Assembly (NCBI RefSeq): GCF_000006765.1
Contig: NC_002516.2
DNA: 64,000 nt
Origin: Pseudomonas aeruginosa PAO1
GTDB taxonomy: Bacteria; Pseudomonadota; Gammaproteobacteria; Pseudomonadales; Pseudomonadaceae
Reading direction: 5' to 3' (one strand)
Shown here: one piece after another, positions 6,824 through 27,927 of the stretch
How the letters are laid out: each line of letters starts with the position of its first letter
How positions within the stretch are numbered: the stretch's first letter is position 1
Notes under the pieces: generated by a model
Databases searched by the model: none
Seen by the model: the letters and a program-made list of their open reading frames with translations, nothing else
What the model was told of the DNA's origin: nothing
Translations under genes and position numbers: made by a program

Positions 6824-6958
6824 GCTGGCGTCCTTTCGTTGTTTGAAGGTCGAGCTTAGCCAGAGCCGCGCGGCAGGGAAAGCGCGATCTCCGACCGGCT
6901 GGTCGAGCCCGGCGCAGACGCTTATGCTGGGTGGCCAGACAGCCCAGGGATGACCGCA

Positions 6959-10337: not shown

Positions 10338-10829
10338 ATGACGTCTCATGCCTTTGCTCGCTGGAATCTTCTGCTTCTGGTCGCTTCCATCTTTGCCGGA
10401 CTTGTCTTTGCTCCGAGTGTCGATCTTTCCGCCTTGCCCACTCCTGAAGCCCGGAAGTGGGTTCTGGCGGAAGTTCCGTCCGTTGCGGTTGATACGACGG
10501 TTGCCGGCAAGTTGGCTGGAATGTCGTGGTGGGGGAGAACCGTGGACGAGGAGCGCGAAGCTGAATCGAAGCGGGTTTCGGTGGGCGTGGATGGAGTGGC
10601 GCTAATCAAGGTCGATTGGCTGCTACGCGGCATTGTCCGCGATGAAGGCGGCATCTTCGCCCTTGTTGCCAAAAGCGCCGAGGGACCTCTGCGGCGTTTT
10701 GCGGCGGGCGCCACTCTGCCTGGCGGCGAGCGTCTGGAGAGCATCACTGAACAAGGAATCCGCTTCTCGTTCTCGCAGGACGGGAACACCCAGGGTTTTG
10801 AAAGGAAACTGTATGCACCCTTGCCATAG
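10338..10829 (+). CDS. GspC/XcpP-like type II secretion protein (TM + HR domain, no PDZ)
   Basis: 163 aa; N-terminal hydrophobic anchor; C-terminal WLLRGIV...FALV...G...AGATLPGGERLESITEQGIRF resembles the T2SS-C/PilP HR fold; overlaps the secretin start. Confidence 0.7.
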   Translation: MTSHAFARWNLLLLVASIFAGLVFAPSVDLSALPTPEARKWVLAEVPSVAVDTTVAGKLAGMSWWGRTVDEEREAESKRVSVGVDGVALIKVDWLLRGIVRDEGGIFALVAKSAEGPLRRFAAGATLPGGERLESITEQGIRFSFSQDGNTQGFERKLYAPLP

Positions 10830-13092
10830 GCCGAGCTTTGCCTTCTTGCGCCACCCGTTGTCCATTGTCGTCTGTCTGGCCCTATTGGCAGGTTGCAGTA
10901 CTTCCCCATTGCAGTTTCCCGAACCATTGCTCGCGAAGTCGGAAAAAGCCAAGGCAACCGAGGGCGTAGCCCTGGTGAGCGACGACGGAAAGAAAGCCCC
11001 GGCATCGTTGGCTGTTCCGAAGACGGAGTTCAGTGGCACGCCCACATCGCCTCGGTCGATCGTAGGCGGTGTAGTCGATCGAATGGACAAGGCGATCCTC
11101 GACGACAAGAAGGCTGACATCAGTCTGAACGTGGAGGACGTACAGCTTGCCGCATTCATCAACGAGGTATTCGGCAACATCCTCGGTTTGCCGTTTGAGA
11201 TCGAAAGCGCTCTGAAGGAAAAGACTGATCGCGTGACCGTTCGTTTGGAACAGCCGCAGACTGCACAGATGGTCTACGAAGTCGCGCGCCAGGTGCTCGT
11301 CAACTACGGCGTGGAGATACTCCACCAAGGCGATATCTATCGCTTCCAGATCAAGCAGGTAGGGCTCAGCCCGGACGAGCCGCCCATTCTCATCAGTGGC
11401 GAAGCACGGCCTAGCGTGCCGATTGCCTATCGGCCGGTATTTCAATTCGTGGCGTTGCACAGCGTCGACCCCAAGGATGTGATTCCCTGGTTGAACAGTG
11501 CCTACGAAAAATCCGGCCTGAGCGTGATGGCCGATGGTGCGCGGAGTGGCTTGATGCTCAAGGGCATGTCTTCCATCGTCAACCAGGCCACCGAAGCCGT
11601 CCGCCTTCTCGATCAACCTTTCATGCGTGGACGTCACAGCCTGCGTATCGACCCGGCCTTCGTCAGTGCTGCCGACATGGCCAGTCAACTCAAGACCGTG
11701 ATTGCGGCGCAAGGCTACAGCGTCGGTATCGGCGAAGCGGTCGGCAGTATAATGCTGGTACCGCTGGAAAGTTCCAATGGCCTCATTGTCTTCGCCAACG
11801 ATGGCCAACTTCTCGACTTGGTGCGCGAGTGGGCGCAGCAGGTCGACAGGGCTCCGATGGCGGTTGCCGCAGGTATCGGCGAGGAGAAGGAAGGACTGTT
11901 CTTCTACGAAGCTCGCAATACCCGTGTCACCGAACTGGCCAAGTCGTTGCGGGCATTGGTATCGGGGTTCGCCGGGGAGGGTGCCTACGGGATCACCTCC
12001 GGACTGCAAAGCAGCGCTTCCAAGCGATCTGGCGGTGGCAGGCGCGCCGGAGACGATGGTGCGGCACCGGCGGTGGCTCCCTTGCTGCAAGCCGCAGGTG
12101 CCGCCGCGTTGGTGGGGGGCGACGGTGCTAACGGTTTGCTCGGTGGCTTGGCGGCCGGTATCAGCGGCAGCGGCACCATAGTGGAGGACGAGAATCGAAA
12201 CGCCATCTTGTTCCGAGGAGCGGCGCGTACCTGGCAGCAGATGCAGGGCTTGCTCCGGGAAATGGACAAGCCGGCCCGCCAGGTATTGATCGAGGTGACG
12301 GTGGCCAGCGTAAGTCTCAGCGACACCCAGGAGTTGGGCGTGGAGTGGGAGATGCTCAACGGCAGCTTCAATAGCGCGACCTCGACCGGAAGCAAGGGCA
12401 GCGCCGGGAAAGGAGGCTTCAACTACGTCATCAACACCGCCGGAGGCAATACCGCAGCCATCCAGGCAATGGCGGACAATCAACGAGTCCGGGTACTCGC
12501 CACTCCCCGTATCTTGGTCAAGAGCGGCGAGCAGGCCAACATCAATGTCGGTCGGGATATTCCTATCCCAACGGCCCAGGTCAATGACGACAGCACCACT
12601 GCTGGAAGCACCAACCTGCGCAATGAAATTGCCTACCGCTCTACCGGCACAATTCTGAATGTCGCCCCCGTAGTCTACTCGGATAGTCGGGTCGATCTTA
12701 CGGTCAGCCAGGAGTTGAGCGACAGTGGCGGTTCTTCCGGCGGCGGTGGCAAGGCCAGTGGTGGAGGAATCAGCGCTCCGGAGATTTCCAGGACGTCGCT
12801 GGAAACATCGCTTACGTTGAAAAGCGGTGGGTCGGTGCTGATGGGGGGGCTGATTCGGGACAACATAACGGACTCCAACGCTGGCGTGCCTCTCCTGAAG
12901 GACATTCCCGGGATCGGTTTCCTCTTCGGACGCCAGAAAGCCGTGAAGACCCGTGAAGAAGTCATCATGTTGATCCAGCCTTACGTGCTGGAAAGTGATG
13001 CCGATGCCAGGGAAGTGACGGAAAAGCTGCACGCCATGCTGAGCAAGACACTGGCCTGCTCCGATAGACCGGGCGCCTGCCGTATGGAATGA
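10813..13092 (+). CDS. xqhB: Type II secretion secretin (GspD family), lipoprotein type (PA1382-like; name xqhB recalled, not verified)
   Basis: 759 aa from ATG 10813 (AGGA RBS); lipobox LLAGC; N0-N3 domains; secretin core LDKPARQVLIEV-like, ATPRILVKSGEQA, GTILNVAP, LKSGGSVLMGGLI, VPLLKDIPGIGFLF. Confidence 0.93.
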   Translation: MHPCHRPSFAFLRHPLSIVVCLALLAGCSTSPLQFPEPLLAKSEKAKATEGVALVSDDGKKAPASLAVPKTEFSGTPTSPRSIVGGVVDRMDKAILDDKKADISLNVEDVQLAAFINEVFGNILGLPFEIESALKEKTDRVTVRLEQPQTAQMVYEVARQVLVNYGVEILHQGDIYRFQIKQVGLSPDEPPILISGEARPSVPIAYRPVFQFVALHSVDPKDVIPWLNSAYEKSGLSVMADGARSGLMLKGMSSIVNQATEAVRLLDQPFMRGRHSLRIDPAFVSAADMASQLKTVIAAQGYSVGIGEAVGSIMLVPLESSNGLIVFANDGQLLDLVREWAQQVDRAPMAVAAGIGEEKEGLFFYEARNTRVTELAKSLRALVSGFAGEGAYGITSGLQSSASKRSGGGRRAGDDGAAPAVAPLLQAAGAAALVGGDGANGLLGGLAAGISGSGTIVEDENRNAILFRGAARTWQQMQGLLREMDKPARQVLIEVTVASVSLSDTQELGVEWEMLNGSFNSATSTGSKGSAGKGGFNYVINTAGGNTAAIQAMADNQRVRVLATPRILVKSGEQANINVGRDIPIPTAQVNDDSTTAGSTNLRNEIAYRSTGTILNVAPVVYSDSRVDLTVSQELSDSGGSSGGGGKASGGGISAPEISRTSLETSLTLKSGGSVLMGGLIRDNITDSNAGVPLLKDIPGIGFLFGRQKAVKTREEVIMLIQPYVLESDADAREVTEKLHAMLSKTLACSDRPGACRME

Positions 13093-13610: not shown

Positions 13611-15416
13611 ATGCTCAAAAGAACACTACTCAGCGCCGCTGTAGCTTCGGCACTGTTTGCTGGAGTCGCGAACGCTGCCGGAGTGGTTGCTATTGCCACA
13701 AGCCCCACTCTGGAGGCGAACTCGCCTGGTGCAACCGAGCAGTACGGACCAGGACAGGCCAACTATGTCGTCGGCAAGAGTGTGGAAAATGGTGCCAACC
13801 TCGACAGCAAGGCGGCCAACATCACCCTGGCTCAGGAGATTTTCGGCAACAAGTCCGAAGAAACTACCTTTGACCTACCCAGCGTTACCTACACCATCGA
13901 TCCAGTGAAGGCTGGAAATGCCGCTGCGGGCCACACCATCAAGCTGACCCTTGGTCGTACCGTCGTGCGCTTCGCCAAGGCCGTGACCGCCAACCAGATC
14001 AAGATCGGCGCCCTGGCGGCGGGTAGCGGCTTCGTCATCACCAGCGGCACTGGCGCCACTGACAACACGCTTGAGCTGCGCCTCGACCAGGCGGGTGCCG
14101 ACATGATCAAGCAGACCGCGACCGGCGGCAACGTGGTGTTCTTCAACTTCCGCGAGCCGAGCAGCCAGGACAGCCAGCCTGCCAAGGTCACCAACATGCG
14201 CGCTCCGCTTCAGGGCGATGCCACCTTCGTGGCTGGAAGCTGGAATCCGAAAGTGAGCCTGCAGAACGACCCGCTGAACGAATTGCGTTTCCAGGTCACG
14301 GTTTCCGCCCAGTTCGATACCACCACTGGCGCCGATGCCGGCAACCCTGCGAATAACGATTCTGCACCGCCCCTGACCATTTTCACTTCGCTGCCCGCGG
14401 TTTACTGGGACGTTCTCAACACCAACCAGTATGGGCAGAATCGCGTCCTGCATCCGTTGAACCTGAACAATCAGGATCGCTCCTTCGATACCACGGTGTC
14501 CGTCGGTGGCGATAACACCGATTATTATGGTGCCAACTATGCGCGTCTGGGCGCCGTACGGCTCGGCATCAATACGGATGTGCTCAACGAAGCGGGTCGA
14601 ACCGTGTTTGGTTTCGCCGGTGGCGACAAGGTGACCAGCACCCTGTCGGGTAACTTCAACGGGATCAGCGACATCGGCCTGACCACCGGGAACTGCTCCG
14701 CCTTTGCCGCCAATCCGGGGTCTGCCGCCAAGCTCTGGAATTCTGCCGCCATCGAAGGTGTAGTGGATGCGCAGGGCAACGGTACTTTGCCGGTATCGTT
14801 CGACAACTCGAATATCAACCAGACCTACAACGTCTGCGTGAAGGCTTCCGGCACCGTGCCGATGCAGGCGCTGCAACGTTTCGACGTGGGTGATCTGAAG
14901 GTCGACTTCGAGAACGTACGCTATGTCGACCGTACCATTGCAGGCAACCGTCTCGACGAGTTCTGGAAGAACAGTTGCGTCGCCAGTCTGTTCAATCTGC
15001 CTGGCTCCAATGTTTCCGACCAGTTCTTCATTCGTCTGACCAACACCAGCGACGATGGTCGGGACGGCAAGGTGCGCGGGGTACTGTTCGACCAGAACGG
15101 TAAGCGTTATCCGGCGACTGGCAGCACCTACCTGACCGACTCGAGCGGGAAGACCGCCCTGAAAGCGCACGAAACCGGTGTGTACACCGTAACCGAAGTA
15201 GCCAAGGCCTTCGGTATCGACGGCACCAACTGGAACGGTGCCAACGGTCGCGCACGTCTGGTCCTGGAAGGCGAGTTCCCAACCTGCGAGGCGCTCGGCC
15301 TGATCCGCTCTGCCAATGGCACCATCACCAACATGACCTCCACCACCCAAGGCAACTTCAACGAAGATGGCTCGTCCACCTCGGAGAACCACAAGGCTGG
15401 TAACAACCGCAACTAA
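13611..15416 (+). CDS. Sec-exported surface protein, candidate S-layer protein (PA1383-like)
   Basis: 601 aa from ATG 13611 (AAGGAG RBS); signal peptide MLKRTLLSAAVASALFAGVANA; rich in A/G/T/N/V/S; no enzyme motif recognised; sits directly behind a secretin. Confidence 0.85.
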   Translation: MLKRTLLSAAVASALFAGVANAAGVVAIATSPTLEANSPGATEQYGPGQANYVVGKSVENGANLDSKAANITLAQEIFGNKSEETTFDLPSVTYTIDPVKAGNAAAGHTIKLTLGRTVVRFAKAVTANQIKIGALAAGSGFVITSGTGATDNTLELRLDQAGADMIKQTATGGNVVFFNFREPSSQDSQPAKVTNMRAPLQGDATFVAGSWNPKVSLQNDPLNELRFQVTVSAQFDTTTGADAGNPANNDSAPPLTIFTSLPAVYWDVLNTNQYGQNRVLHPLNLNNQDRSFDTTVSVGGDNTDYYGANYARLGAVRLGINTDVLNEAGRTVFGFAGGDKVTSTLSGNFNGISDIGLTTGNCSAFAANPGSAAKLWNSAAIEGVVDAQGNGTLPVSFDNSNINQTYNVCVKASGTVPMQALQRFDVGDLKVDFENVRYVDRTIAGNRLDEFWKNSCVASLFNLPGSNVSDQFFIRLTNTSDDGRDGKVRGVLFDQNGKRYPATGSTYLTDSSGKTALKAHETGVYTVTEVAKAFGIDGTNWNGANGRARLVLEGEFPTCEALGLIRSANGTITNMTSTTQGNFNEDGSSTSENHKAGNNRN

Positions 15417-15439
15417 GTAAGTCGCTTTAGCTGCAGGCC

Positions 15440-15471
15440 AAAGGAGGCGATCTCCTCGATCGCCTCCTTTT
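15440..15471 (+). terminator. Rho-independent terminator
   Basis: Perfect 13-bp stem AAAGGAGGCGATC / GATCGCCTCCTTT, loop TCCTC, ending in TTTT; 23 nt after the stop. Confidence 0.88.
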
Positions 15472-15567
15472 CCACTGGGTAAGTAGAAAGAGAGTGCGTT
15501 ACAGACGGGCTCGATGGGAGTTCTTACCCCTGAAAACCCAGCTCTGTACGTATCAAGGTGAGGCGAG

Positions 15568-16581
15568 ATGCGCGTATTGGTCACAGGAGGTGCAGGATTC
15601 ATTGGCTCTCATGTGTTGGTCGAACTCTTAGGCCAAGGCGCCAAGGTTGTGGTTCTGGATAATCTTGTCAACGGTTCTTCGGAATCTCTAAAGCGAGTGG
15701 AAAGAATAACCGGGCATCCGGTTGGCTTCGTACTGGGAGATGTTAGAGACAGTCTTCTTGTTGAGCGCCTGCTGATCGATGAGAAGGTTGATGCGGTCAT
15801 TCATCTGGCAGGGTTGAAAGCTGTTGGAGAAAGCGTTGATGACCCGCTGGAGTATTACGAGAGCAACGTTCAGGGAACTATTTCGCTGCTACGCGCCATG
15901 CAGAGGGTCGGGGTATTCAAGATTGTCTTCAGTTCTTCCGCAACGATCTATCAGATGCCTGGCACCTTGCCTATATCCGAGAGTTCGAAAGTGGGAGGCG
16001 TGGCCAGTCCCTATGGCCGGACAAAACTGACTGCCGAGCACATGCTCGATGACCTGGCTCGCTCCGATACGCGTTGGTCCATCGCGGTGCTCAGATACTT
16101 CAACCCCATCGGTGCTCATGAAAGCGGCCTCATTGGTGAGGACCCATGCGGTACCCCAAACAATCTTCTGCCCTATATCGCCCAGGTTGCAGTCGGACGT
16201 TTGAGTCGGTTGACGGTACATGGCGGCGACTATCCGACTATCGACGGGACGGGAGTCCGGGACTACATCCATGTTTGCGACCTGGCAGCAGGACATACCA
16301 GGGCGCTCGAATACCTGGGGCAGGGGCACGGCTACCACGTCTGGAATCTTGGGACGGGCACCGGCTATTCGGTCTTGCAGGTCATCGAAGCTTTCGAGCG
16401 AGTCTCTGGCAGGCGCATTCCCTTTACGGTGTCCGGTCGCCGCCCAGGCGATGTGGCTGAGTGCTGGGCGGATGTTTCCAAGGCGGAGCGAGAGTTGGGC
16501 TGGAAGGCGGGGCTGGGCCTCGAATGCATGATTGCGGATGCCTGGCGCTGGCAGGTTTCCAATCCGAGTGGGTATTCATGA
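15568..16581 (+). CDS. galE: UDP-glucose/GlcNAc 4-epimerase
   Basis: 337 aa; TGGAGFIG, HLAGLKAVGES, SSSATIY, YGRTK, LRYFNPIGAH, GTGVRDYIHV. Confidence 0.95.
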   Translation: MRVLVTGGAGFIGSHVLVELLGQGAKVVVLDNLVNGSSESLKRVERITGHPVGFVLGDVRDSLLVERLLIDEKVDAVIHLAGLKAVGESVDDPLEYYESNVQGTISLLRAMQRVGVFKIVFSSSATIYQMPGTLPISESSKVGGVASPYGRTKLTAEHMLDDLARSDTRWSIAVLRYFNPIGAHESGLIGEDPCGTPNNLLPYIAQVAVGRLSRLTVHGGDYPTIDGTGVRDYIHVCDLAAGHTRALEYLGQGHGYHVWNLGTGTGYSVLQVIEAFERVSGRRIPFTVSGRRPGDVAECWADVSKAERELGWKAGLGLECMIADAWRWQVSNPSGYS

Positions 16582-17729: not shown

Positions 17730-17748
17730 GGATCTGGCTGTGAGTTGT

Positions 17749-19017
17749 ATGAAGGGTAATGCGCCGGTACTTGCGGCCGTAGATATAAGCAAGGGTTTTA
17801 GAGTCTACAGGGCTCCTCATCAAAGGATGTTGCAGGCCATCTGGGGTGAGAGAAAGAAATTTTATTCGGAATTCTGGGCTCTGCGGAATGTGAGTTTCCA
17901 GGTTTTTCCTGGGGAGGTTGTTGGAGTAATCGGCTGCAACGGCTCCGGGAAGTCCACCTTGCTGCAGATACTTGCGGGTACCTTGCGCCCTACGAGTGGA
18001 CAGGTGGTTCGCCCAGAAAGGGTAGCGGCATTGTTGGAGCTGGGGGCCGGTTTCAACATGGAGTACACCGGCAGGGAAAACATAATCTTCAATGCCATGC
18101 TTCTTGGATTGGGCGAGCAGGAGATTTCTGAACGCCTCGACGAGATAATCCAGTTTGCCGATATCGGTGAGTTCATCGATCGTCCGGTTAGAACATATTC
18201 GAGCGGTATGTTCGTGCGTTTGGCTTTCTCCATTGCGGCATATGTCGATGCCGATGTGCTGATCGTGGACGAGGCCCTGGCGGTAGGTGACGCCGCGTTT
18301 CAGTTCAAATGCCTGAACCGGCTTGAAGAACTGCTGCTGAAAGGCATCACCATCCTGCTGGTCTCCCACGATATACAGTTGATCAAGAGTTATTGTAGTC
18401 GAGCGATCTATCTATCCAAAGGTAGAGTGATATTCGATGGCGACTGTGAAACAGCCACGGAACTCTATCTGCGGGACAGTATAGAGACACAGCGGGCGGA
18501 AGTCCGCTCAGGAAGCCTGATCGCTTCTGGCGAACACGGGAACTCGGTAATTGCATATGGAAATGGGCAGGGCAGGTTTCTATCCATCCGTATGGGTGTA
18601 CTTGACGAAGCCCGGGATTACTTCGATTCGGGCGAACGTGTCTGGGTCGAGGTACTTGTGCAATTTGACCTACCCGTCCCGGAGCACCCAAAAATCACCC
18701 TGACTATCCGTGACCAGCGCGGTTACAACCTCTATGGCATAAACAATTTATTGCTGGGCAAGGCTCTGAATGTCGAGCCTGACGGGCGCTTGAGAACACG
18801 TATCAGCTTCGACTGCGACTTGCAGGCTGGCGAATACGCCTTGACGTTTCGTCTGGAGAACTCTTTGTCGGAGTCCGTTTGCGAACTCATGGATAAAAAG
18901 GTCAATGCGGCGATATTCAGGGTCTTCAATTCGCCCAAGTGCTTCGATGCAGTGGTGAATCTGCATGGAGCATTCGAGCCGGTTCCGTTCTGCTGCGAGA
19001 CCCGGGCTACCCAATGA
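17749..19017 (+). CDS. wzt: Polysaccharide ABC exporter ATPase with C-terminal Wzt_C carbohydrate-binding domain
   Basis: 422 aa; FWALRNVSF, GCNGSGKST, YSSGMFVRLAF, LIVDEALAVGD, VSHD; about 170-aa C-terminal extension (F.SGE...V.V...ITLTIRDQRG...GEYALT). Confidence 0.92.
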   Translation: MKGNAPVLAAVDISKGFRVYRAPHQRMLQAIWGERKKFYSEFWALRNVSFQVFPGEVVGVIGCNGSGKSTLLQILAGTLRPTSGQVVRPERVAALLELGAGFNMEYTGRENIIFNAMLLGLGEQEISERLDEIIQFADIGEFIDRPVRTYSSGMFVRLAFSIAAYVDADVLIVDEALAVGDAAFQFKCLNRLEELLLKGITILLVSHDIQLIKSYCSRAIYLSKGRVIFDGDCETATELYLRDSIETQRAEVRSGSLIASGEHGNSVIAYGNGQGRFLSIRMGVLDEARDYFDSGERVWVEVLVQFDLPVPEHPKITLTIRDQRGYNLYGINNLLLGKALNVEPDGRLRTRISFDCDLQAGEYALTFRLENSLSESVCELMDKKVNAAIFRVFNSPKCFDAVVNLHGAFEPVPFCCETRATQ

Positions 19018-20720
19018 AGTCATCGTCTTTGACCATGGTATTCGTCGTCCACGCCGGCGAGCTGGAAATCAAGTCTGCCGTGTTGGCGGCTTCTCTACGC
19101 AAACGCTTTGGCTTTTCCATGGATATCATTGCCGCATGTCCATCGGGAAAGGCTGACTGGGGTGTGCCAAGCGATGCATCCCGGCGCTTATATGAGCGTT
19201 TGGGCATTCCTCTTTTGCCTATGGATAGTCCTTTCGGGCCAGAGTATCCAATAGGCAACAAGTTCGCGGCGTTGGCGCTGGGGCCGGCTGTTGGGCATAC
19301 GTTGTTTCTCGACAGTGACATGATCTGTGTCGATGCATTCGAAGCTGACATGCTTTGTCGTTTCGATGCGGCACTCAAACCTGCCGATATGGCATTGGTG
19401 GCAAAACAGAACGATTACTGGGAACGCATATACGCCCATGCGGGATCGGCATTGCCTGGAGATCGGGTAGTGACCACTTGTTCCGGGGAAGCGATGCCTG
19501 CGTACTATAACGCTGGCTTTATCCTGGTACGTGATGCCAGGCGTTTCGCCGAAGTCTGGTACAGGCTCGCCGAACGCGTCCATGCGGATCCGCTGATCAC
19601 CAACAAGATGCCCTGGCTGGACCAGCTGACGCTACCCGTCGCTCTGCACGCGTTGAACTACAAGACGAGAGCGCTCAGCGAACGGTTCAATTATCCGCTT
19701 CATATCAAGCCGCTATCCGCTGCGTCCCTACCACCCTTCTTCTGCCACTACCATTCTCTCGACACACTTGTCAGCGAGCGTTCGCTATGGGCCGAACTGG
19801 ACGAACTGGCCAAGCGTTTCCCTGAGCTGCGCGAAGTGCTTGCGCTGGATGCCAACTGGAAGAAGGCAATCCTGGCTCCTGCGCCTCGGCTGGCTTTCTC
19901 GGAAGGTGATTCCACCGGCACTGTCGAGGCCGGACAGGACCTGGTGATCACCGGGATTCCCCGGAGCGGAACCAGCCATCTATGCCGTCTGCTCTCCCAG
20001 CAGCCCGACACCGTGGTGCTCAATGAACCTCCTCAGGTATTCGAAGCGCTGAAGCTCTCGCCTCTTCCTTGGGGACTGCCACGCTACTACGCAGAGTTAC
20101 GTCGCGACATCCTGGCGGGCAGGCCCGTGCCGAACAAGCATGTGAATGGCCGCCTGGTCGACGACACTGCCAGGGGCAACGATCAGTCCAGCGACTATTT
20201 CGCTGAGGTGCGGGGGGCTTCGTTTCACCTGGGAACGAAGAACACGCTTGCCTATATCGCCCGGCTGCCCCTGATTCGCAAGGTCATGCCGACGGCGTTG
20301 CTGATCGCAACCATCCGTCATCCCTACGACACCCTGAACTCCTGGGCGAACACCTTCGAGCACCTGCGCCAGGCTGCCGTCGAACGCCAGCCGTTCGGAT
20401 GTCCCGATGACCTGGCCCTCACGGGATGGCAGCGCAAGGCACTACTGGCCATTGCCGATACCGACCACCTAGCTGTCCGGCGTGCTCTGTGGTGGCGTTA
20501 CCTGGCACTGCAACTGGAGGACGCCGGGGATTACGTCCAGTTGTTGCGCTACGAGGATTTCGTCGAGGCGCCGCAAACGACCTTGGCCGCTCTGCGAAAC
20601 AACCGCCCCTTGCCTTTCGACGAGCCTGCGGTGTGGAGCAAGGGGCTGGCGCCGGACGAGCAGGAGCTGGTTGCCAACATAGTCTGCGACGTTGCCGAGC
20701 GATTCCACTACGTCTTGTAG
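19014..20720 (+). CDS. GT8-like glycosyltransferase fused to a sulfotransferase domain
   Basis: 568 aa; ATGA overlap. N-half FLDSD, YYNAGF, WLDQ, RFNY, CHYH (GT8 pattern). C-half ITGIPRSGTS (5'-PSB loop), IRHPYDTLNS (3'-PB), LRYEDF. Confidence 0.75.
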   Translation: MKSSSLTMVFVVHAGELEIKSAVLAASLRKRFGFSMDIIAACPSGKADWGVPSDASRRLYERLGIPLLPMDSPFGPEYPIGNKFAALALGPAVGHTLFLDSDMICVDAFEADMLCRFDAALKPADMALVAKQNDYWERIYAHAGSALPGDRVVTTCSGEAMPAYYNAGFILVRDARRFAEVWYRLAERVHADPLITNKMPWLDQLTLPVALHALNYKTRALSERFNYPLHIKPLSAASLPPFFCHYHSLDTLVSERSLWAELDELAKRFPELREVLALDANWKKAILAPAPRLAFSEGDSTGTVEAGQDLVITGIPRSGTSHLCRLLSQQPDTVVLNEPPQVFEALKLSPLPWGLPRYYAELRRDILAGRPVPNKHVNGRLVDDTARGNDQSSDYFAEVRGASFHLGTKNTLAYIARLPLIRKVMPTALLIATIRHPYDTLNSWANTFEHLRQAAVERQPFGCPDDLALTGWQRKALLAIADTDHLAVRRALWWRYLALQLEDAGDYVQLLRYEDFVEAPQTTLAALRNNRPLPFDEPAVWSKGLAPDEQELVANIVCDVAERFHYVL

Positions 20721-20736
20721 AACCGGGAGAACCCTT

Positions 20737-21465
20737 ATGCTGGATATCAGTTTAATCATGAATTTCCATGCGGAAGACGTGCTGGCGCATTGGAGCCTGC
20801 TGGGTTTTCAACGCATGCGTGAATTTGCGTCGCACCATGGGGTTTCCGTGCAGTTGGTGGCGGTGCTCGACCGCGCCTCGCAAACGACTCGGCGAATCGT
20901 CAGGCAGCATCCGATCCTGCGCGAGGGCGACAAGGTCCTTCAGGTCGAGCATGGTGATCTCGGGCTTTCCCGGAACGCCGGGATCGATAGCGCGGATGCG
21001 TCCACGGTGGGGGTGTTGGATGGCGACGACTACTGCTCGGCGAACTGGTTGGTCGAAGCCCTGCAGGTGGTATCCGAGAAGGGCAATGGCGTCGTGGTCC
21101 ATCCCGAGTACACGGTGAGCCATGGAGCCTGCCATTTGCTGGGGCGTTCGGTAGATCAACTGAGCGAAGACTATCCCGTGGAAAGTTGCTTCAAGCATCA
21201 CCCATGGGTTTCCGTTGCCGTAGCCGAGAAAGCCGTATTCCAGGAGCTTCCATACCTGGAGACCCGAGTCGGGAAATCCGGCTTCGGTTATGAAGATTGG
21301 CATTGGAATCTCGAGGTGATTGCGTCCGGTCGGAAGCACACCCTGGCTAGCGGCACCTGCCTGTTCTATCGCCGCAAGGAAGCATCGATGCTGGCCGCCA
21401 TGGGCGCGCTGAACGCAGTGGTTCGCCCCGGACGATTCTTCGATGGACGGTGTTTCGATCACTAG
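20737..21465 (+). CDS. GT2 glycosyltransferase
   Basis: 242 aa; SLIMNFH, VLD, GLSRNAG, VLDGDD, GYEDW. Confidence 0.8.
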   Translation: MLDISLIMNFHAEDVLAHWSLLGFQRMREFASHHGVSVQLVAVLDRASQTTRRIVRQHPILREGDKVLQVEHGDLGLSRNAGIDSADASTVGVLDGDDYCSANWLVEALQVVSEKGNGVVVHPEYTVSHGACHLLGRSVDQLSEDYPVESCFKHHPWVSVAVAEKAVFQELPYLETRVGKSGFGYEDWHWNLEVIASGRKHTLASGTCLFYRRKEASMLAAMGALNAVVRPGRFFDGRCFDH

Positions 21466-21561: not shown

Positions 21562-23046
21562 ATGAGCCTGAACGGCAGACTGAAAGCTCGTGCGGCCAGC
21601 TTCGCTCGCACAGCCTATCCACCTATTCTTGGATCGTTGCGGCGGGTGCTCTCCGAGCGCCAACTACAACGCTTCATACTGGTCTGCGACCGTTTGAAGG
21701 GCTGGTTGCTCAAGGAGGCAGTCGTCGTACCGTCACCCTCTCCGATGGCGCTGCCGCCATGGATAGTCGACGAAATGAAGGCGTTGGCCCGGATCGAGCC
21801 TGCCCTGTATCCCTCGGCGGCGAAGCTGCGCGTTTTCACTTCCTGGAAGGCCCCGATAGATAACGGACCGGCGCAACTGTACCGGGGATGTCTGGCGGAC
21901 TTCATCGAATATGCGCCGGATATGGTCTTCCTCGTCCCGCATTTGCAGCGTGGTGGCGCTGACCTGGGAATCCTGCATCATGTGCGGTTATGCGCCGAGA
22001 TGGGCGTGAAGGTGACGGTAGTGGTCACGCGGGATGTGGTGTCTCCCTGGCTCAACCGGCTTCCGGCGGAGGTTCGGGTGGTGGAGTTCGGACGCCTGGG
22101 CAATCTGCTCGGCGAGGAGGACCGGCGCCTGGTACTGCTGCGCCTTTTGCTGCAATGTCCTGCCAGGAGTATCCACATCATCAACTCGCAACTGGCCTGG
22201 GAACTGCTCGAGCGGCATGGCAAGACGTTGACGTTCGAGGGTAAGCGGATTTACGCCAGCGTCTTTTGCGACGACCTGGACGGCAATGCGGTTCGCTGCG
22301 GCTATGCCAGCGAGTTCCTCCCACGGTCCTGGATGCACCTGGCGGGCCTGCTTTCGGATAACCGGACCTTCCTCCAACAGATTCACGAGCGGGACGGCAT
22401 TCCGCCGGAGCTCATGCATGGGCTCTACTTTCCCGCCAGCGACCATGCAGAGGCGATTCCGACCGCAGGCTCGACGATTCTTTGGGCCAGCCGTATCTCG
22501 CCGCAGAAAAGGCCGGACCTGCTCTACGAGATTGCCCTGGCGCTTCCCGAATACCTGTTCGAAGTCCACGGCGAGGTCGATCCTGCTTGCAGGGGAGAAA
22601 CCCAGAGGAAGCTGCGACGCCTGCCGAATGTCAGGCTTCATGGGCGTTACGACTCCTTCCAGGCCCTGGCTCGGCAGGGGCGATATGCGATGTTGCTGTA
22701 TACCTCTCGCTATGACGGCTTGCCGAACATCCTGCTCGAAGCCACTGCTGCAGGGCTGCCCATAGTCGCCCCCGACGTCGGGGGTATCGCTGAGTTCCTG
22801 AATACCGAAACGGGCTATCTGGTCGGCGCTGACGCCGATGCCGGCGAGTTCGCAAGGGCAATCAGGAGTGCGCTGGGCAATCCCGGGGAGACGGCGAGAC
22901 GGGTGAAACGCGCCCGCGAGTTGCTGACGCGACGTCATGGCTGGGCCGCATTCAGGGACGCGGCCAGGAACATACCCGGCTACCTGCCTGGGGGCGTGCG
23001 GCCGGAACAAGAGGTCTCCATGGAAACCGAACCGGTGTCCGGGTGA
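21562..23046 (+). CDS. GT4 glycosyltransferase
   Basis: 494 aa; GGAD, WASRISPQKRP, SRYDGLPNILLEA, PDVGGIAE. Confidence 0.88.
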   Translation: MSLNGRLKARAASFARTAYPPILGSLRRVLSERQLQRFILVCDRLKGWLLKEAVVVPSPSPMALPPWIVDEMKALARIEPALYPSAAKLRVFTSWKAPIDNGPAQLYRGCLADFIEYAPDMVFLVPHLQRGGADLGILHHVRLCAEMGVKVTVVVTRDVVSPWLNRLPAEVRVVEFGRLGNLLGEEDRRLVLLRLLLQCPARSIHIINSQLAWELLERHGKTLTFEGKRIYASVFCDDLDGNAVRCGYASEFLPRSWMHLAGLLSDNRTFLQQIHERDGIPPELMHGLYFPASDHAEAIPTAGSTILWASRISPQKRPDLLYEIALALPEYLFEVHGEVDPACRGETQRKLRRLPNVRLHGRYDSFQALARQGRYAMLLYTSRYDGLPNILLEATAAGLPIVAPDVGGIAEFLNTETGYLVGADADAGEFARAIRSALGNPGETARRVKRARELLTRRHGWAAFRDAARNIPGYLPGGVRPEQEVSMETEPVSG

Positions 23047-24266
23047 AGGGCGTGAGGTCGGCCCATTTTCTGCAGCGCCTGCTATTTTCCCTACCGCCTG
23101 CTTTTCGTTCGTGGCTGGGAGAGAAGGGAAGGCACCTGGTCCATCTTGTCCTCGATATCGGTTCGGCCTCGGCGCTCCGGCAGGATTCCGGGCACGCCAC
23201 TCAGTGGGATCCGCAGAAGCCCCTGCTGAGCGTGGTCATTCCCTGCTTCAACCATGGGAGGTATTTGAGGCGCGCGCTTGATAGCCTGGCTCGGCAGAGC
23301 TTCCAGGACTTCGAGATCATTCTGGTCGACGATGGTTCTGATGACCCTTCGACCCTGGGCCTCCTCGAGGCTCTCCAGGAGCCCGGCATGACGATCCTGC
23401 GCCAGCCCAATCGTGGGCCATCCGCCGCGCGGAATGCCGGTGTGGCGCGGGCGAGGGGGCGTTATATCTGCTGCCTGGATGCGGATGACTGGCTGGCGTC
23501 CACCTATTTGGAAAAGTGCCTGGTCTTGCTGGAGGGAAACTCTGGCGTCCGCCTGGCGTACAGCTGGGTCCAGCTGGTGGGAGAGGAGCATCGGCTGCAT
23601 CGTTCCGCCGGCTTTCATCCCGGACTGTTGCGTTACTTCAATCCGTTCTGTGTCTCCGCGATCTTTCATCGCGATGACTGGCTGGCGGTAGGCGGTTTCG
23701 ACGAAGCCAGGGAGGCACAGTTCGAGGATTGGGATTTCTGGATCGCCCTGGTCGGATGTGGGGTGCGAGGCAGGCTGATCAGGGAACCCCTGTTGTTCTA
23801 TCACCGCCAGGTCGGCTCCAGACTGGAGACCGGCAAACGTCATGCCTTGAGTTCTTACAAGCGCATGCGGACTCGCCATCCTCGCCTCTATCGAGGGAGT
23901 CCATTTCTTCGAGCGCAGCGGCAAGGCTATTACGACTGCTGGGCATATCCTCCTCTGCTCAACCTCTCCCGCGCCGACCAATACAACGCCGTCCTATCCG
24001 ATGCGGTAGCCGTGGTGGCCGACGCGCCGCTCACCGAGGACTGGAACGCATGGCGTCGACAATTCGATGAGCTGCCAGCGTCCTCGACGGTTTTCGTCAT
24101 TGCCGGTGGGTGCCGGAAGCTCCCGGGCTGGCTGCTGGAGAGGGCGAGCGCCATCTACTGGCTGGACGACCTGCTGCACGAGCGGCAATGGTCGGCTTTC
24201 ATCGATAACTTCAGGCGGACCCGCGGAATCTCCAAGGTGTTTTCCGTGGGCAGGACGGCGTGGTGA
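23043..24266 (+). CDS. GT2 glycosyltransferase with C-terminal extension
   Basis: 407 aa, GTG start overlapping the upstream TGA; SVVIPCFN, LVDDGSDD, ARNAG, CLDADD, VGGFDE, FEDWDFW. Confidence 0.9.
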   Translation: MKGVRSAHFLQRLLFSLPPAFRSWLGEKGRHLVHLVLDIGSASALRQDSGHATQWDPQKPLLSVVIPCFNHGRYLRRALDSLARQSFQDFEIILVDDGSDDPSTLGLLEALQEPGMTILRQPNRGPSAARNAGVARARGRYICCLDADDWLASTYLEKCLVLLEGNSGVRLAYSWVQLVGEEHRLHRSAGFHPGLLRYFNPFCVSAIFHRDDWLAVGGFDEAREAQFEDWDFWIALVGCGVRGRLIREPLLFYHRQVGSRLETGKRHALSSYKRMRTRHPRLYRGSPFLRAQRQGYYDCWAYPPLLNLSRADQYNAVLSDAVAVVADAPLTEDWNAWRRQFDELPASSTVFVIAGGCRKLPGWLLERASAIYWLDDLLHERQWSAFIDNFRRTRGISKVFSVGRTAW

Positions 24267-26035
24267 AGGTTCTTTCGCGAGGTCCCGTCGCCGATGCCGT
24301 GCCGTTACTGTCCATCCTCACGGCCTGCGATTGCAGCGTGGAGGAGTTCGAACGAATCGCCGCATTTCTCGAGACGCAGACGCTGAAACGCTGGTGCTGG
24401 ATTCATTGCCCAGGAGTGGACAGTGACTGTCTTCCGGTAGAGGGGATGGCGGTACTGTACTTGCCGCGAGCACCGGCAGCCCTGAGGGCGACTGCTCTGG
24501 AAGAGGCGATCTGGTTCCTGCTGTCCCTACCGACCCTGCCGTGGGTCGAACTCCGCGAAGATGCGCGACGCGGCGATCTCTTCGTCAGTCGCAGGTCGTT
24601 GCCCGAGGGCCGTATTGGCGCAAGGCTGAACGGGCGCAGGCAGCCTTGCTCGTCGGCCATGCTGGCGCCGGGGAGCTTGCCTAAGGCCCCGGGAAAGCGC
24701 TTGTTACTGCTGGCGCCCTGGCTTGAGCCAGGCGGAGCGGATCGTTGCAATCTGGATCTGCTTCGAGCCTTGGCCCGGGAGGGCTGGATGCTGACGGTGG
24801 TCGCCAGCCTGGCGGCCGAGCATCGGTGGCGGGATCGTTTTACCGCGCTCACTGCGGATGTCTGGGTGCTTCCGGACTTTCTGTCTGCCGAGAAAGCTTG
24901 CGGCTTCCTTGCTTATCTGGTGGACAGTCGACAACCCGACCTGATGCTGCTTTCCAACTCTGCATTCGCCTATGACGTGCTGGGGTACGTCCGGACCCGC
25001 TACCCGGGCCTGCCCGTGGTCGACCTCAATCATATGGAGGAGGGCTGGGACGATGGCGGCCATCCGGGTAGAGCCGCTCGATGCACTGCCTTGCTGGACA
25101 GGCACTGGGTCGTATCCGGGCACCTGCGCCACTGGCTGCTCGACCGTGGCGTCGAGGCGAGCAAGGTCGAGGTGTTGCACTGGTTCGCCGATGTGGACTC
25201 GTGGAAACCCGACAGCCTGACGCGCGCGAAGGTCCGGGCGCGCCTGGGAATAGCTCCGCAGTGCGTAGTGATCGCCTATGCGGGGCGGCTCTGCGCGCAG
25301 AAACGACCGGAGCTGTTTGCCGCCAGCCTTGGCGAGTTGGCGCGCCGTGGTAGTGATTTCGTCGCGTTGGTACTGGGCGATGGCGAGCTGGCAGGGGAGC
25401 TGCGGAACGACCTCCGGCGCCATGGCTTGGCCGGGCGGGTACGGATGCTGGGCTGGCAGGACGAGGCTGCGTTGCGCGAGTTGTTCCAGGCCTCCGATAT
25501 ATTTTTCCTGCCATCGGCCGGCGAAGGTATCGCACTGGTTCTCTACGAGGCGATGGCGTGCGGAATGGCCATAGTCGCAGCCGATGTCGGCGGTCACGCA
25601 GAACTGGTCTCTGCCCACTGCGGCTTCCTTGTTCCGCGGCGCGATGCCGAACGAGAGGCCAGGGATTACGCCGCTAGGCTCGAGAGCCTCATGCGCGAAC
25701 CGGAAATGCTTGGGCGGATGGGGCAGAACTCCGCACGCCGCATCCGCGAAGCATTCACCTTGTCTCTTTTCGAGCGGCGTTTGCGGGAGTTGCTGGAACG
25801 CGTGCCGGTTTCGACTCCATGCGGCGTTTGCACGGATAGTCCGGTGCCTGCCCTGGGGGCGGCCAGGCTGTCCATGCAATGGGCTTCCTACCGACTGGCA
25901 AACGGATTGCGCTGCCGGCTGGATATCCAGAAGCACGGCCGTTTTTCAAGATTCCTGGAGCGATGCGCGAAGGGGGTGTTCTTCTTGCGCACATTCGGGG
26001 CGAAGGCGCTTTGGCAAAAGATCAGGAAGCACTGA
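24260..26035 (+). CDS. GT4 glycosyltransferase with degenerate GT2-like N-terminus
   Basis: 591 aa; PWLEPGGAD, YAGRLCAQKRP, LGDG, EX7E GEGIALVLYEAM, ADVGG. Confidence 0.88.
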   Translation: MVKVLSRGPVADAVPLLSILTACDCSVEEFERIAAFLETQTLKRWCWIHCPGVDSDCLPVEGMAVLYLPRAPAALRATALEEAIWFLLSLPTLPWVELREDARRGDLFVSRRSLPEGRIGARLNGRRQPCSSAMLAPGSLPKAPGKRLLLLAPWLEPGGADRCNLDLLRALAREGWMLTVVASLAAEHRWRDRFTALTADVWVLPDFLSAEKACGFLAYLVDSRQPDLMLLSNSAFAYDVLGYVRTRYPGLPVVDLNHMEEGWDDGGHPGRAARCTALLDRHWVVSGHLRHWLLDRGVEASKVEVLHWFADVDSWKPDSLTRAKVRARLGIAPQCVVIAYAGRLCAQKRPELFAASLGELARRGSDFVALVLGDGELAGELRNDLRRHGLAGRVRMLGWQDEAALRELFQASDIFFLPSAGEGIALVLYEAMACGMAIVAADVGGHAELVSAHCGFLVPRRDAEREARDYAARLESLMREPEMLGRMGQNSARRIREAFTLSLFERRLRELLERVPVSTPCGVCTDSPVPALGAARLSMQWASYRLANGLRCRLDIQKHGRFSRFLERCAKGVFFLRTFGAKALWQKIRKH

Positions 26036-26056: not shown

Positions 26057-27280
26057 ATGACGCCCAGGGTGGTGGTGATTCTCGGCATGCATCGCTCCGG
26101 TACGAGCGTACTTTCCGCCGGACTCGAGGCGCTCGGGGTCGAGTTTGGCGAGAATCTGATCCCACCCAGGCCGGACAACCCCAAGGGATACTGGGAAGAT
26201 GCCCGCCTGGTGGCTTTCAATGACAGAGTCCTGTCCCTGTGTGGGTTTTCGTCGGGCGACGTCGGGTTGTCCAGTCGCCGGGTGCTGGGCGTCGAGCGAT
26301 TCGAAGAGATCGTCCAGCAGGCCATGGCGCTTTTGACTGAGCTACTGGCAGGCAAGGCGCTGCTGGGTATCAAGGATCCGCGTATGCCGCGTCTGATGCC
26401 GATCTGGCAAGCCGCGTTCGATGCATTGGGGCTATGGGTCGACTATGTCATCGCGGCTCGCCATCCTCTTAGCGTCGCGGAGTCTCTTGCTACCCGTGAC
26501 CACTTGAGTCGGGAAAAGAGCCTGATGCTCTGGTACGAACATTCCTGTCGCTCGATGCAGTGGGCGCTCCACAAGGGGGCCGTGGTGGTCGACTACGATC
26601 GTTTGCTGGCTCTGCCGCGACAGGAACTGGGCCGTATTGGCCATCGACTTTCCTTGCCGGTGGACGAGTCGGCTTGCGCCCGCTTCGTCGGTGATGTCCT
26701 GGATGTCGCATTGCGTCACTCATCCCATGATGCGAGCGCGTTGGCTGCCGCAGCGGGAAGCTTTCAGGCGCTGCTCGAGGTGCATGAGGCACTGCAGCAG
26801 CTTGCCGTGGACCGGTTCGACATCGAAGGGTGGAAGGGCCTGGAGCGGGAATTCAGCAGAGCGATGCCGTTGCTGGAGTACGTGGGGGAGCTGGACAGGC
26901 AACTCTGGCAATCGGCTTCGTCCCACAACGAGAGCATGACGCGGTTCAGCGAGCAGGTGGCTGACCTGGCCATGAGCTATACCGCACAGAGGCAACTGAA
27001 CGATGGACTGAGAGATCGCTTGCTTGAGGCCGGTGCTCGGGACGAACAGAACGAACGAGCCATGCGGGAACTTTCTCGGCGATTGTCGGTGTGTCGCGAA
27101 GAGCTTGTTTCCGCTCAGCGCAATCTCGCCGAAACGGACAACTTGCTACGGCGCACGCAGGTAGATCGCGATGATACTCACGCCCGTTTGATGGCTATAT
27201 TGGACAGTCGCTTCTGGCGTTTCACGAAACCCTTGCGAAACCTGTCCCGTCTGTTCGGCAGCGAGACGGGGTGTCCCTGA
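26057..27280 (+). CDS. Sulfotransferase-family domain + coiled coil + C-terminal amphipathic helix (WbdD-like architecture)
   Basis: 407 aa from ATG 26057 (GGAGG RBS; alternative 26036). ILGMHRSGTS, NPKGYWED, IKDPR, RHPLSVAESL; heptad-rich C-terminal third; tail LDSRFWRFTKPLR. Confidence 0.75.
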   Translation: MTPRVVVILGMHRSGTSVLSAGLEALGVEFGENLIPPRPDNPKGYWEDARLVAFNDRVLSLCGFSSGDVGLSSRRVLGVERFEEIVQQAMALLTELLAGKALLGIKDPRMPRLMPIWQAAFDALGLWVDYVIAARHPLSVAESLATRDHLSREKSLMLWYEHSCRSMQWALHKGAVVVDYDRLLALPRQELGRIGHRLSLPVDESACARFVGDVLDVALRHSSHDASALAAAAGSFQALLEVHEALQQLAVDRFDIEGWKGLEREFSRAMPLLEYVGELDRQLWQSASSHNESMTRFSEQVADLAMSYTAQRQLNDGLRDRLLEAGARDEQNERAMRELSRRLSVCREELVSAQRNLAETDNLLRRTQVDRDDTHARLMAILDSRFWRFTKPLRNLSRLFGSETGCP

Positions 27281-27336: not shown

Positions 27337-27927
27337 TCAGGCTGGCTGGTTCGTCTCCAGGTAGGAAATGATTCGCTTCACCGCCAGGTCGGGGTCTTCT
27401 GAAAGTGTATCGATCGTTATGTTCGGCTGTGCGGGCGTTTCGTAGATCGAGTCGATCCCGGTGAAGTTTTCGATCTTGCCCGAGCGTGCTTTCCTGTACA
27501 GGCCTTTGGGATCTCTTCTCTCGCATTCCGAGAGCGGCGTATCGACAAAGACCTCGATGAAATGCTCGATGCCGATAAGTTCCCGAGAGAGGCGCCTGTC
27601 TCGCGAAAATGGCGAGATGGTTGCCACGATCACGATAAGGCCGGCTTCCAGCAGGATCTTTGCCACTTCCGCGATTCTTCGAATGTTCTCGGTGCGATCT
27701 TCGTCGCTGTAGCCAAGGTTTCGGCACAGGCCAAGGCGGAGATCGTCGCCGTCCAGGAGAAACGTATGTTTCTTCTGTTCGAAAAGCGCTAGTTCCAGGG
27801 CACTCGCAATAGTGGATTTTCCAGCGCCACTCAACCCGGTCAGCCAGATGACCGCTGGGCGTTGGCGCTTGAGCGCACTGCGTGTCTCGTTATCGATCGA
27901 TCGTTTTCCATGTTCACGAGGATTCAT
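27337..27927 (-). CDS. cysC: Adenylyl-sulfate (APS) kinase
   Basis: 196 aa; [47 protein letters not shown]. Confidence 0.96.

Follow-up and report, generated by a model that had tools for sequence, protein, structure and literature searches.

A candidate sulfate-capping chain terminator with a predicted coiled-coil stalk, encoded in a putative surface-glycan operon of Pseudomonas aeruginosa PAO1

Within a 64,000-nucleotide stretch of the Pseudomonas aeruginosa PAO1 genome (contig NC_002516.2; hereafter, the window), the forward-strand open reading frame (ORF) at 26057..27280 encodes a 407-residue protein with a head, a stalk and a basic tail. Our analysis confirms these three parts as a sulfotransferase head of the type that uses 3'-phosphoadenosine 5'-phosphosulfate (PAPS), a long heptad helix, and a conserved motif joined to a cationic amphipathic helix. 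We consider it rather likely, though well short of certain, that this protein, PA1392, is the chain terminator and length ruler of a surface glycan exported by an ATP-binding cassette (ABC) transporter, with sulfate as the terminating group. This explanation starts from features that are observed directly: the fold, the PAPS-binding motifs, the heptad helix, the properties of the tail, the setting of the gene in its operon, and the way in which related proteins of other bacteria are repeatedly fused to polymerase-type glycosyltransferases (GTs) near wzm-wzt.

The head (residues 1-250, 26057..26806; all elements of the gene lie on the forward strand) has an alpha/beta P-loop-like fold in an AlphaFold2 (AF2) model of the whole protein that was built on a 35-sequence alignment (mean predicted local distance difference test score, pLDDT, 90.4; predicted template-modelling score, pTM, 0.75); most of the domain exceeds a pLDDT of 90. 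The 13 matches that Foldseek returned against the PDB at E <= 0.001 (3e-6 to 9e-4) were exclusively PAPS sulfotransferases (TPST1/2, the CurM and olefin synthase sulfotransferases, SULT1D1), and the first 35 PDB sequences matched by a profile of 25 head domains were all sulfotransferases, ahead of any other protein. A first-pass annotation of the window had proposed an N-terminal PAPS-loop-like domain containing GMHRSGTS, and the proposal held: this octapeptide is the 5'-phosphosulfate-binding loop of a sulfotransferase fold (residues 10-17, 26084..26107) and falls within the match to Pfam Sulfotransfer_3 (positions 2-22 of the Pfam model). Among 35 full-length homologues, aligned for conservation and ranging down to 25% identity, M11-S17 of the loop are invariant and G10 is kept in at least 90%; in the 25 head domains all eight loop residues are invariant. 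The second nucleotide-binding element is RHPLSVAES (R135-S143, 26459..26485), whose R135 and S143 are invariant and which the head profile aligns opposite 'VRHPYSVIES' of the CurM sulfotransferase and 'ARNPKDVAVS' of human SULT1A3; in sulfotransferases this is the motif that binds the 3'-phosphate of PAP(S). The full set of invariant head residues comprises H12, R13, S14, G15, T16, S17, N41, G44, E47, K106, P108, R109, R135 and S143, of which R13, E47 and K106 presumably fit the catalytic arginine, glutamate base and lysine of TPST2 (R78, E99 and K158).

Domain libraries alone would have said little about this head. When PA1392 was searched by itself against Pfam and NCBIfam, nothing emerged beyond coiled-coil noise and a match to Sulfotransfer_3 that covers the loop alone and stays below threshold (20.5 bits against a curated cutoff of 27; E 6.4e-4), and the fold was therefore assigned through the AF2 model and Foldseek. 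Other proteins score higher with Sulfotransfer_3 (29.3 bits for a relative from locus L055, 57.1 bits for a PA1387-like protein). Because its own score falls below the curated cutoff, PA1392 belongs to a divergent sulfotransferase subfamily. Taken together, the 3'-phosphate-binding motif and the structural matches, which bear out the first-pass preference for a sulfotransferase over an ATP-using kinase, identify the head from sequence and model as a PAPS-dependent sulfotransferase and not a kinase; sulfuryl transfer itself is predicted.

Beyond the head, the protein continues into one long helix (residues 256-383, 26822..27205), which is a single DSSP helix in the AF2 model and the predicted coiled-coil stalk. 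The first-pass annotation had placed a heptad-rich helix at about residues 260-385 and had suggested structure and coiled-coil predictions as a check; both the unbroken helix and a heptad register that stays constant over residues ~253-365 agree with it, so that a coil is indeed predicted. Hydrophobic residues fill 25 of the 38 a/d positions, as against 24 of the 95 other positions, and the mean best-register score is 0.451 compared with 0.283 +/- 0.045 in shuffled sequences, none of which (0/500) reached the observed value. If extended, at ~1.5 A per residue, the 128 residues would span ~19 nm. Two P. aeruginosa variants of the protein are 95% identical in the head and 81% in the coil, with the same coil length (128 aa); in more distant relatives coil identity drops to 10-46% and coil length lies anywhere between 71 and 160 aa, and the distance from the phosphosulfate-binding loop to the tail motif varies from 315 to 991 aa across 60 relatives that have both. 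Judging from these patterns, the stalk appears to behave as a spacer. With the head at the far end of a coiled-coil-like helix of ~128 residues and an amphipathic, cationic tail at the other, the layout matches the WbdD-like architecture that had been suggested.

The coil ends in SRFWRFTKPLR (residues 384-394, 27206..27238), a tail already singled out by eye in the first-pass annotation and highly conserved among the 35 homologues. Its consensus is S-x-S-W-R-x-T-x-P-L-R, with S384 and W387 present in at least 90%, and most full-length relatives end their coils in the same SxSWRxTxPLR motif; in the six-frame translation of the window it occurs once. Overlapping the motif is a cationic amphipathic helix (residues 386-400, 27212..27256), a putative membrane-interface or docking element: at residues 386-398 the helical hydrophobic moment reaches its maximum for the protein (0.90; mean 0.35, standard deviation 0.18), the net charge of the tail is +4, and in the AF2 model, where pLDDT declines, two short helices occupy 385-389 and 391-400. 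These properties resemble those of an interfacial membrane-binding or docking helix, a role that we regard as putative.

The motif region reaches far beyond this family. When 1.84 billion proteins were searched with a 43-position profile of it, 12,792 cluster representatives matched at E <= 0.001, and we found no Pfam match for the region. Fifty-nine long motif proteins were assigned domains, which included GT2 (27), GT1 (10), Methyltransf_23 (9), RgpF (5) and Sulfotransfer_3 (1), with other methyltransferase families in smaller numbers. In other proteins (among P0121-P0270) the motif lies internally or in two to four tandem copies 45-120 aa apart. The tail of PA1392 is conserved, amphipathic and cationic, and the first-pass annotation did not see that the motif is more than a C-terminal anchor; the sequences identify SxSWRxTxPLR as a general module of polysaccharide-assembly proteins. 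It also stands behind methyltransferase heads, as in locus L010, where the motif is at residue 305. Because that locus encodes Methyltransf_24, coil, motif and WsaF_C in this order, the stalk-and-base module can be said to carry a head of the classic terminator chemistry.

The gene has two plausible starts. The ATG at 26057, from which all residue numbers here are counted, is preceded at 8 nucleotides by the Shine-Dalgarno sequence GGGAGG; an alternative ATG at 26036 lies directly behind the stop codon of the upstream GT4 gene, whose end precedes it by 1 nucleotide, and would give 414 aa. Both forms are annotated in public P. aeruginosa records. The assignment to PA1392 is by position and comes from counting ORFs from PA1383 and galE, the latter being PA1384 (PMC8850804). 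Window coordinates equal PAO1 coordinates minus 1,488,000, an offset that follows from the identity of the antisense ORF at 13875..15602 with olg2 at PAO1 1501875-1503602 (PMC8850804). NCBI names the protein 'sulfotransferase family protein'; the identical 414-aa sequence recurs on 230 contigs of P. aeruginosa, and 842 members fall into its cluster at 90% identity. Some P. aeruginosa assemblies encode shortened versions of 293-356 aa at 98% identity (P0003, P0009-P0011), and PA1392, which has been counted among the virulence-related genes of PAO1, is reported to be lacking in strain LESB58 (PMC3189399). Some P. aeruginosa lineages may therefore be losing the locus by decay.

Two neighbours link the protein to sulfate activation and to glycan export. 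PA1392 is the last gene of an operon that runs galE, a GT4 gene, wzt, a gene for a fusion of a GT8-like part with a sulfotransferase, four GT genes, and PA1392. Converging on it from the reverse strand, with 56 bp between the two stop codons, is cysC (27337..27927), a gene for an adenosine 5'-phosphosulfate (APS) kinase (Pfam APS_kinase E 5.9e-64; NCBIfam adenylyl-sulfate kinase E 7.5e-78), as the first-pass annotation had noticed. The Wzt with a carbohydrate-binding domain (CBD) that it also reported is present (17740..19017, forward strand; ABC_tran E 1.6e-21, Wzt_C E 1.2e-19), ~7 kb upstream on the same strand and apparently in the same operon, and is not immediately adjacent. The translation of wzt has intact Walker A, signature, Walker B and H-loop motifs, and its best PDB sequence match (E 1.7e-75 over residues 13-377) is a 404-residue 'ABC transporter' chain, 8DKU/7K2T, which we take to be the Wzt subunit of the Aquifex aeolicus O-antigen transporter.

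Comparison with other bacteria often places the family beside wzm-wzt. A scan of species-representative genomes gave relatives in 582 of the 600 matches listed, so that the total is at least this large, and 80 loci were examined; they span Proteobacteria, Nitrospira, Binataceae, Bacteroidales, Paenibacillus and others. A Wzt-type ATPase is encoded within 10 kb in 43 of the 80, a Wzt of at least 380 aa in 30, and a CysC homologue in 17. In 20 loci wzt lies directly upstream (within 100 bp) on the same strand, and in 16 of those 20 Wzt has at least 394 aa, which should be long enough to hold a C-terminal extension. The usual order is wzm, wzt with a CBD, and then a protein of 1000-1650 aa that combines a sulfotransferase head, a coil, the motif and two GT modules (GT2+GT2, GT1+GT2, GT2+WbsX or GT1+RgpF); wzm is present in many loci of this fused type. 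At least 236 aa follow the motif in 23 of the 60 relatives having both loop and motif, and in all seven long relatives scanned the modules behind it are GT1, GT2, RgpF or WbsX. In several of the fused relatives scanned, among them those of L002, L017 and L047, the sulfotransferase head is the sole non-GT catalytic domain beside a CBD-bearing Wzt; L010 is an exception, with its additional methyltransferase domain. Every part of the first-pass reading that sequence can test has thus held up, and comparative genomics lends independent support, because the gene directly follows wzt in 20 of 80 loci and the module is in many loci fused to polymerase GTs in the manner of WbbB.

The closest relative for which genetic data exist is 'WbbB' of Aeromonas salmonicida A450 (ORF20, 1122 aa), whose residues 8-223 are 37% identical to the PA1392 head (E 8e-36). 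Both the loop and the R...S motif are retained in its head, behind which come a coil, GT1 and GT2, and the protein has a degenerate tail motif (SVFWKRR...). The published gene order is vapA (encoding the S-layer protein), wzt, a small sulfotransferase gene and 'wbbB', deletion of either wbbB or wzt abolishes the O-antigen, and the sulfotransferase genes of the locus were left unexplained (PMC4483657). The protein was published as an 'N-acetylglucosaminyl transferase', its sulfotransferase head having been overlooked by the authors. In A. salmonicida ATCC 33658 (L054), 'WbbB' is encoded at 4047..7415 and preceded by a separate Sulfotransfer_1 gene at 3202..3960. The presence of two sulfotransferases after wzt is common to A. 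salmonicida and P. aeruginosa.

If PA1392 terminates and measures a glycan, its parts would work together as follows. The basic, amphipathic C-terminus (motif and helix) would lie at the inner face of the cytoplasmic membrane, beside the glycosyltransferases that extend an undecaprenyl-linked glycan, and the coiled coil of 128 residues, in a probable dimer or trimer, would hold the N-terminal sulfotransferase ~19 nm away, where it could be reached solely by chains that have grown long enough. The head would then move sulfate from PAPS, supplied by the neighbouring CysC, onto the non-reducing end, and extension would stop. Wzt_C of the operon's own Wzt would recognise the capped end and admit the chain for export. 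That sulfation would be terminal, that the coil would set modal length, that Wzt_C would read the sulfate, and the oligomeric state of the protein are all proposed by analogy with WbdD and WbbB.

The remaining genes of the operon, all on the forward strand, supply further candidates for glycan synthesis. At its head, galE (15568..16581) encodes a galE-type epimerase by Pfam and is followed by a GT4 gene (probable start 16578, end 17729), assigned from Pfam and synteny. Directly after wzt, whose stop codon its start overlaps by 4 nucleotides, comes PA1387, the gene for the second sulfotransferase (19014..20720), which joins a GT8-like N-terminal part to a full Sulfotransfer_3 domain (E 3.9e-15, residues 335-560); the start was set from homologues of 561-572 aa, and the GT8-like part has a weak NCBIfam match to lipopolysaccharide (LPS) alpha-galactosyltransferase (residues 121-251). 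Because this fusion and the PA1392 head share no significant similarity, the two sulfotransferases of the operon are not duplicates. The fusion occurs in 3 of the 80 wider loci, yet in every Pseudomonas cassette, and may attach a sugar, at the chain terminus or on a side chain, and sulfate it. Between it and PA1392, four genes identified by Pfam encode GT2-like (20692..21465), GT4 (21562..23046), GT2 (23043..24266) and GT4 (24260..26035) proteins, which are candidate adaptor and polymerase enzymes; five further Pseudomonas lineages have these genes in the same order.

The operon sits in an island of low G+C content (~10000-28500; 0.51-0.63 against 0.66-0.71 in the flanks), bounded by an AraC-type regulator gene and a hybrid sensor kinase gene. 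At its edge is a lone secretin gene (10633..13092, forward strand; Pfam Secretin and Secretin_N), and among the larger ORFs between it and the operon there was no match to other type II secretion proteins. Just before galE lies PA1383 (13611..15416, forward strand), which encodes a 601-aa secreted protein with the signal peptide MLKRTLLSAAVASALFAGVANA. On the opposite strand, an ORF of 575 aa (13875..15602) is contained in PA1383 and reaches into galE; this is the published olg2, an overlapping gene reported to be transcribed, translated and under purifying selection (PMC8850804).

The Pseudomonas version of the locus is inherited as a cassette. Its order (a PA1383-like gene, galE in some cases, GT4, wzt with Wzt_C, the GT8-like/sulfotransferase fusion, GTs, and the sulfotransferase-coil protein) recurs in Pseudomonas sp. 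OTU5201, in two Pseudomonas from compost metagenomes, in P. schmalbachii and on a Logan contig, five lineages besides P. aeruginosa. PA1392 and its counterparts are 40-63% identical, their chromosomal settings differ, and the ORFs are intact. In P. schmalbachii the cassette (L085, 11506..19202) lies immediately upstream of rpsA, an HU/IHF-like gene and lapA/lapB, and its neighbours also include WbpL-like (Glycos_transf_4) and WbpM-like (Polysacc_synt_2) genes. We take this neighbourhood to be the region of the classical Pseudomonas O-antigen locus, and the setting fits an LPS-linked product. The cassette of Pseudomonas sp. OTU5201 has no secretin.

PA1383 is the constant companion of this cassette. 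It has no Pfam or PDB sequence match, and its homologues, ~24 cluster representatives, are confined to the P. aeruginosa/citronellolis/nitroreducens/delhiensis/schmalbachii group, always on the same contigs as the closest homologues of PA1392; none was found in the 80 related loci. Between P. aeruginosa and OTU5201, PA1383 is 80% identical and PA1392 52%. An AF2 model (pLDDT 71) shows a chain of Ig-like beta-sandwiches, with low-scoring structural matches (by template-modelling score, TM) to Ig-like adhesin and pilin arrays. PA1383 appears in a surface-shaving proteome, and in PAO1 it is transcribed, translated and detected by mass spectrometry (PMC8850804). VapA of A. salmonicida and PA1383 have no sequence similarity; because PA1383 mirrors vapA in its position before wzt, it may act at the cell surface as a partner of the glycan.

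Several observations weigh against PA1392 as a sulfate-capping terminator. The operon holds a second, unrelated sulfotransferase directly after wzt, and it could be this fusion that makes the cap, or sulfation could be internal. No wzm was detected in the 64-kb window (tblastn with four Wzm proteins from related loci; best E 0.13), a hydropathy scan of the island found no ORF with four or more transmembrane segments, and wzm is likewise absent from the syntenic cassettes of all five other Pseudomonas lineages (L081-L086). Without a local wzm, either a shared Wzm is encoded elsewhere, that of the common polysaccharide antigen locus being the first candidate, or the export route is a different one; the order of the cassette, conserved without wzm in different settings, speaks for selection on a working unit that lacks its own wzm. 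Moreover, we know of no glycan product of the PA1384-PA1393 locus, for which repression by MvaT and MvaU, as reported for PA1383, may be the reason. These xenogeneic silencers are reported to repress PA1383 (PMC8850804). The published structure of the A. salmonicida O-antigen shows no sulfate (PMC4483657), but one terminal sulfate per chain could have been missed. Finally, a membrane-anchoring role for the tail motif is a guess, because the motif occurs internally and in tandem in other proteins.

Some of the same observations would be accounted for by an enzyme that decorates the glycan, sulfating it internally once per repeat, with coil and tail serving to dimerise and dock the enzyme and the cap being made by the GT8-like/sulfotransferase fusion or by another protein. 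The operon would then have a use for two sulfotransferases, and O-polysaccharides with sulfate on every repeat are known from marine bacteria; in addition, the motif-coil module is not exclusive to terminators, because glycosyltransferases of the ordinary kind have it too (of the 59 long motif proteins, 27 carry GT2 and 10 carry GT1). We nevertheless regard this explanation as unlikely. In every system studied, it is the terminator that occupies the far end of the coil (PMC11231755), a head ~19 nm from the polymerase would be poorly placed to modify each new repeat, and in fused relatives such as those of L002, L017 and L047 no other non-GT catalytic domain accompanies the sulfotransferase head, although the Wzt beside it bears a CBD and, by the paradigm, needs a cap to read. 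Still less likely, in our judgement, is that PA1392 is a functionless relic of a horizontally acquired and silenced island from which, for want of wzm, no glycan is exported in P. aeruginosa. The low G+C content of the island, the missing wzm, the reported repression of PA1383 by MvaT and MvaU (PMC8850804), the reported absence of PA1392 from LESB58 (PMC3189399) and the shortened variants P0003 and P0011 in some assemblies would all fit such a history. Against it, five other Pseudomonas lineages keep the order of the cassette, with intact ORFs, in chromosomal settings that differ and with 40-63% identity; the 90%-identity cluster has 842 members; the catalytic-site residues are invariant; Wzt retains its Walker A, signature, Walker B and H-loop motifs; and PAO1 transcribes and translates PA1383, whose product mass spectrometry detects.

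Two further alternatives concern the chemistry of the head. The best structural matches are tyrosylprotein sulfotransferases, and the secreted 601-aa PA1383 is always inherited with the cassette, so that PA1392 might sulfate tyrosines of a protein such as PA1383, in the manner of TPST or RaxST, and not a glycan. This we hold to be improbable: the TPST matches are weak (TM scores 0.35-0.51, 16-20% identity) and are equalled by CurM and cytosolic sulfotransferases, and therefore reflect the shared fold, while the partners of the family are wzm-wzt and fused GTs, with PA1383 homologues in 0 of the 80 related loci. Furthermore, the signal peptide of PA1383 marks it as an exported protein, and PA1392, which lacks one, should stay in the cytoplasm. 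The tyrosine-sulfotransferase reading was rejected on the glycan context found throughout the family. Least credible of all is a kinase whose GMHRSGTS loop would bind ATP and whose cap would be phosphate, as in WbdD. A P-loop-like fold is common to sulfotransferases and nucleotide kinases, and a few kinases do appear low in the Foldseek list (E 2e-3 to 6e-3), but all 13 matches at E <= 1e-3 are sulfotransferases and the loop fits the sulfotransferase consensus xGxxRSGTS and not the Walker A pattern GxxxxGK[ST]. The PAP(S)-specific R135..S143 motif is invariant and aligns with those of the CurM sulfotransferase and SULT1A, and a dedicated APS kinase adjoins the gene. The kinase reading was rejected on the 3'-phosphate-binding motif and on structural matches to sulfotransferases only.

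A sulfate-capping terminator would matter beyond this locus, since termination by an enzyme that is both partner of a polymerase and molecular ruler is a central model for the sizing of bacterial surface glycans, with three cap chemistries demonstrated. If true, a sulfate cap would add a new chemistry, would account for the sulfotransferase genes in ABC-type O-antigen clusters such as that of A. salmonicida, and would imply that chains end in an epitope which routine structure determination may have overlooked. In P. aeruginosa, a much-studied pathogen, it draws attention to PA1384-PA1393 as a glycan locus that awaits characterisation, and the SxSWRxTxPLR motif at the coil end offers a handle for finding such assembly proteins in genomes. 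We advance only tentatively the wider proposal that joins all of these parts: that sulfate is a further class of terminating cap, added by a large and phylogenetically broad family with sulfotransferase head, coil and SxSWRxTxPLR motif and read by the CBDs of Wzt proteins, and that in the P. aeruginosa group the system is a mobile cassette, reportedly silenced by MvaT and MvaU, that makes a so-far-unseen sulfated glycan, with PA1383 as a possibly S-layer-like partner and a Wzm encoded elsewhere.

How PA1392 relates to known enzymes depends on which of its parts is compared. With sulfotransferases of the Sulfotransfer_3, TPST and CurM types it shares the fold, the 5'-phosphosulfate-binding loop and the 3'-phosphate-binding motif, whereas none of the solved sulfotransferases among the matches aligned with its stalk or tail motif. 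PAPS-dependent sulfation of glycoconjugates, on the cell surface or secreted, is familiar from NodH and LpsS of Sinorhizobium and Stf0 of Mycobacterium, often together with genes for PAPS synthesis; to our knowledge, these enzymes are not associated with coiled-coil stalks and do not act as Wzt-coupled chain terminators. The open literature that we searched contained no paper linking a sulfotransferase to a coiled-coil terminator or to recognition by Wzt; the related O-antigen papers it did contain put forward no sulfate cap, and where the PA numbers of the locus turned up the mentions were incidental. A census by Mann, Kimber and Whitfield (Glycobiology, 2019) reportedly announced 'new chemistries' and may already list sulfotransferase heads. 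A sulfate-capping terminator has therefore possibly been predicted earlier, and as far as the open literature searched shows has never been demonstrated.

Among glycan terminators, the nearest in layout is WbdD of E. coli O9a and K. pneumoniae O3, which like PA1392 is a stand-alone protein with an N-terminal enzyme, a coiled coil and a C-terminal amphipathic helix, which in WbdD belongs to a membrane-proximal region (PMC11231755). The coil of WbdD is of similar length, at ~130 residues and ~20 nm. Its head combines a kinase with a methyltransferase and makes methyl-phosphate, in contrast to the PAPS sulfotransferase head of PA1392, in which Pfam found neither a kinase nor a methyltransferase domain; and wzm accompanies wzt in WbdD loci, unlike in the PAO1 locus. 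A full-length profile of the PA1392 family retrieved no WbdD chain among PDB sequence matches at E <= 1, and by sequence PA1392 is an analogue of WbdD and not a member of its family. The two systems are alike in that the polymerase is a separate protein and Wzt has a carbohydrate-binding module (CBM), which in the WbdD system reads the cap (PMC11231755). In all of the capped systems studied, a coiled coil carries the terminating enzyme at its distal end and the CBM of Wzt reads the cap, and the caps demonstrated are methyl, methyl-phosphate and Kdo (PMC11231755). Terminator mutants of such systems accumulate over-long polymer that stays inside the cell (PMC11231755).

Many relatives of PA1392 share instead the layout of WbbB (K. 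pneumoniae O12 and Raoultella terrigena) and ORF6 (K. pneumoniae O7), in which a head and a coil are followed by two GT modules and the gene comes directly after wzm and a wzt with a CBD. The heads differ, being a GT99 beta-Kdo transferase in WbbB of O12, a methyltransferase-kinase in O7 and a sulfotransferase in the relatives. The P. aeruginosa protein is the split form of this arrangement, without GT domains of its own, and 'WbbB' of A. salmonicida A450, the closest relative with genetic data, differs from it in being fused. A dedicated S-layer type II secretion system occupies the place in A. salmonicida that is equivalent to that of the PAO1 secretin. The association of an S-layer gene and a secretion system with the A. 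salmonicida locus is echoed in PAO1 by PA1383 and the secretin.

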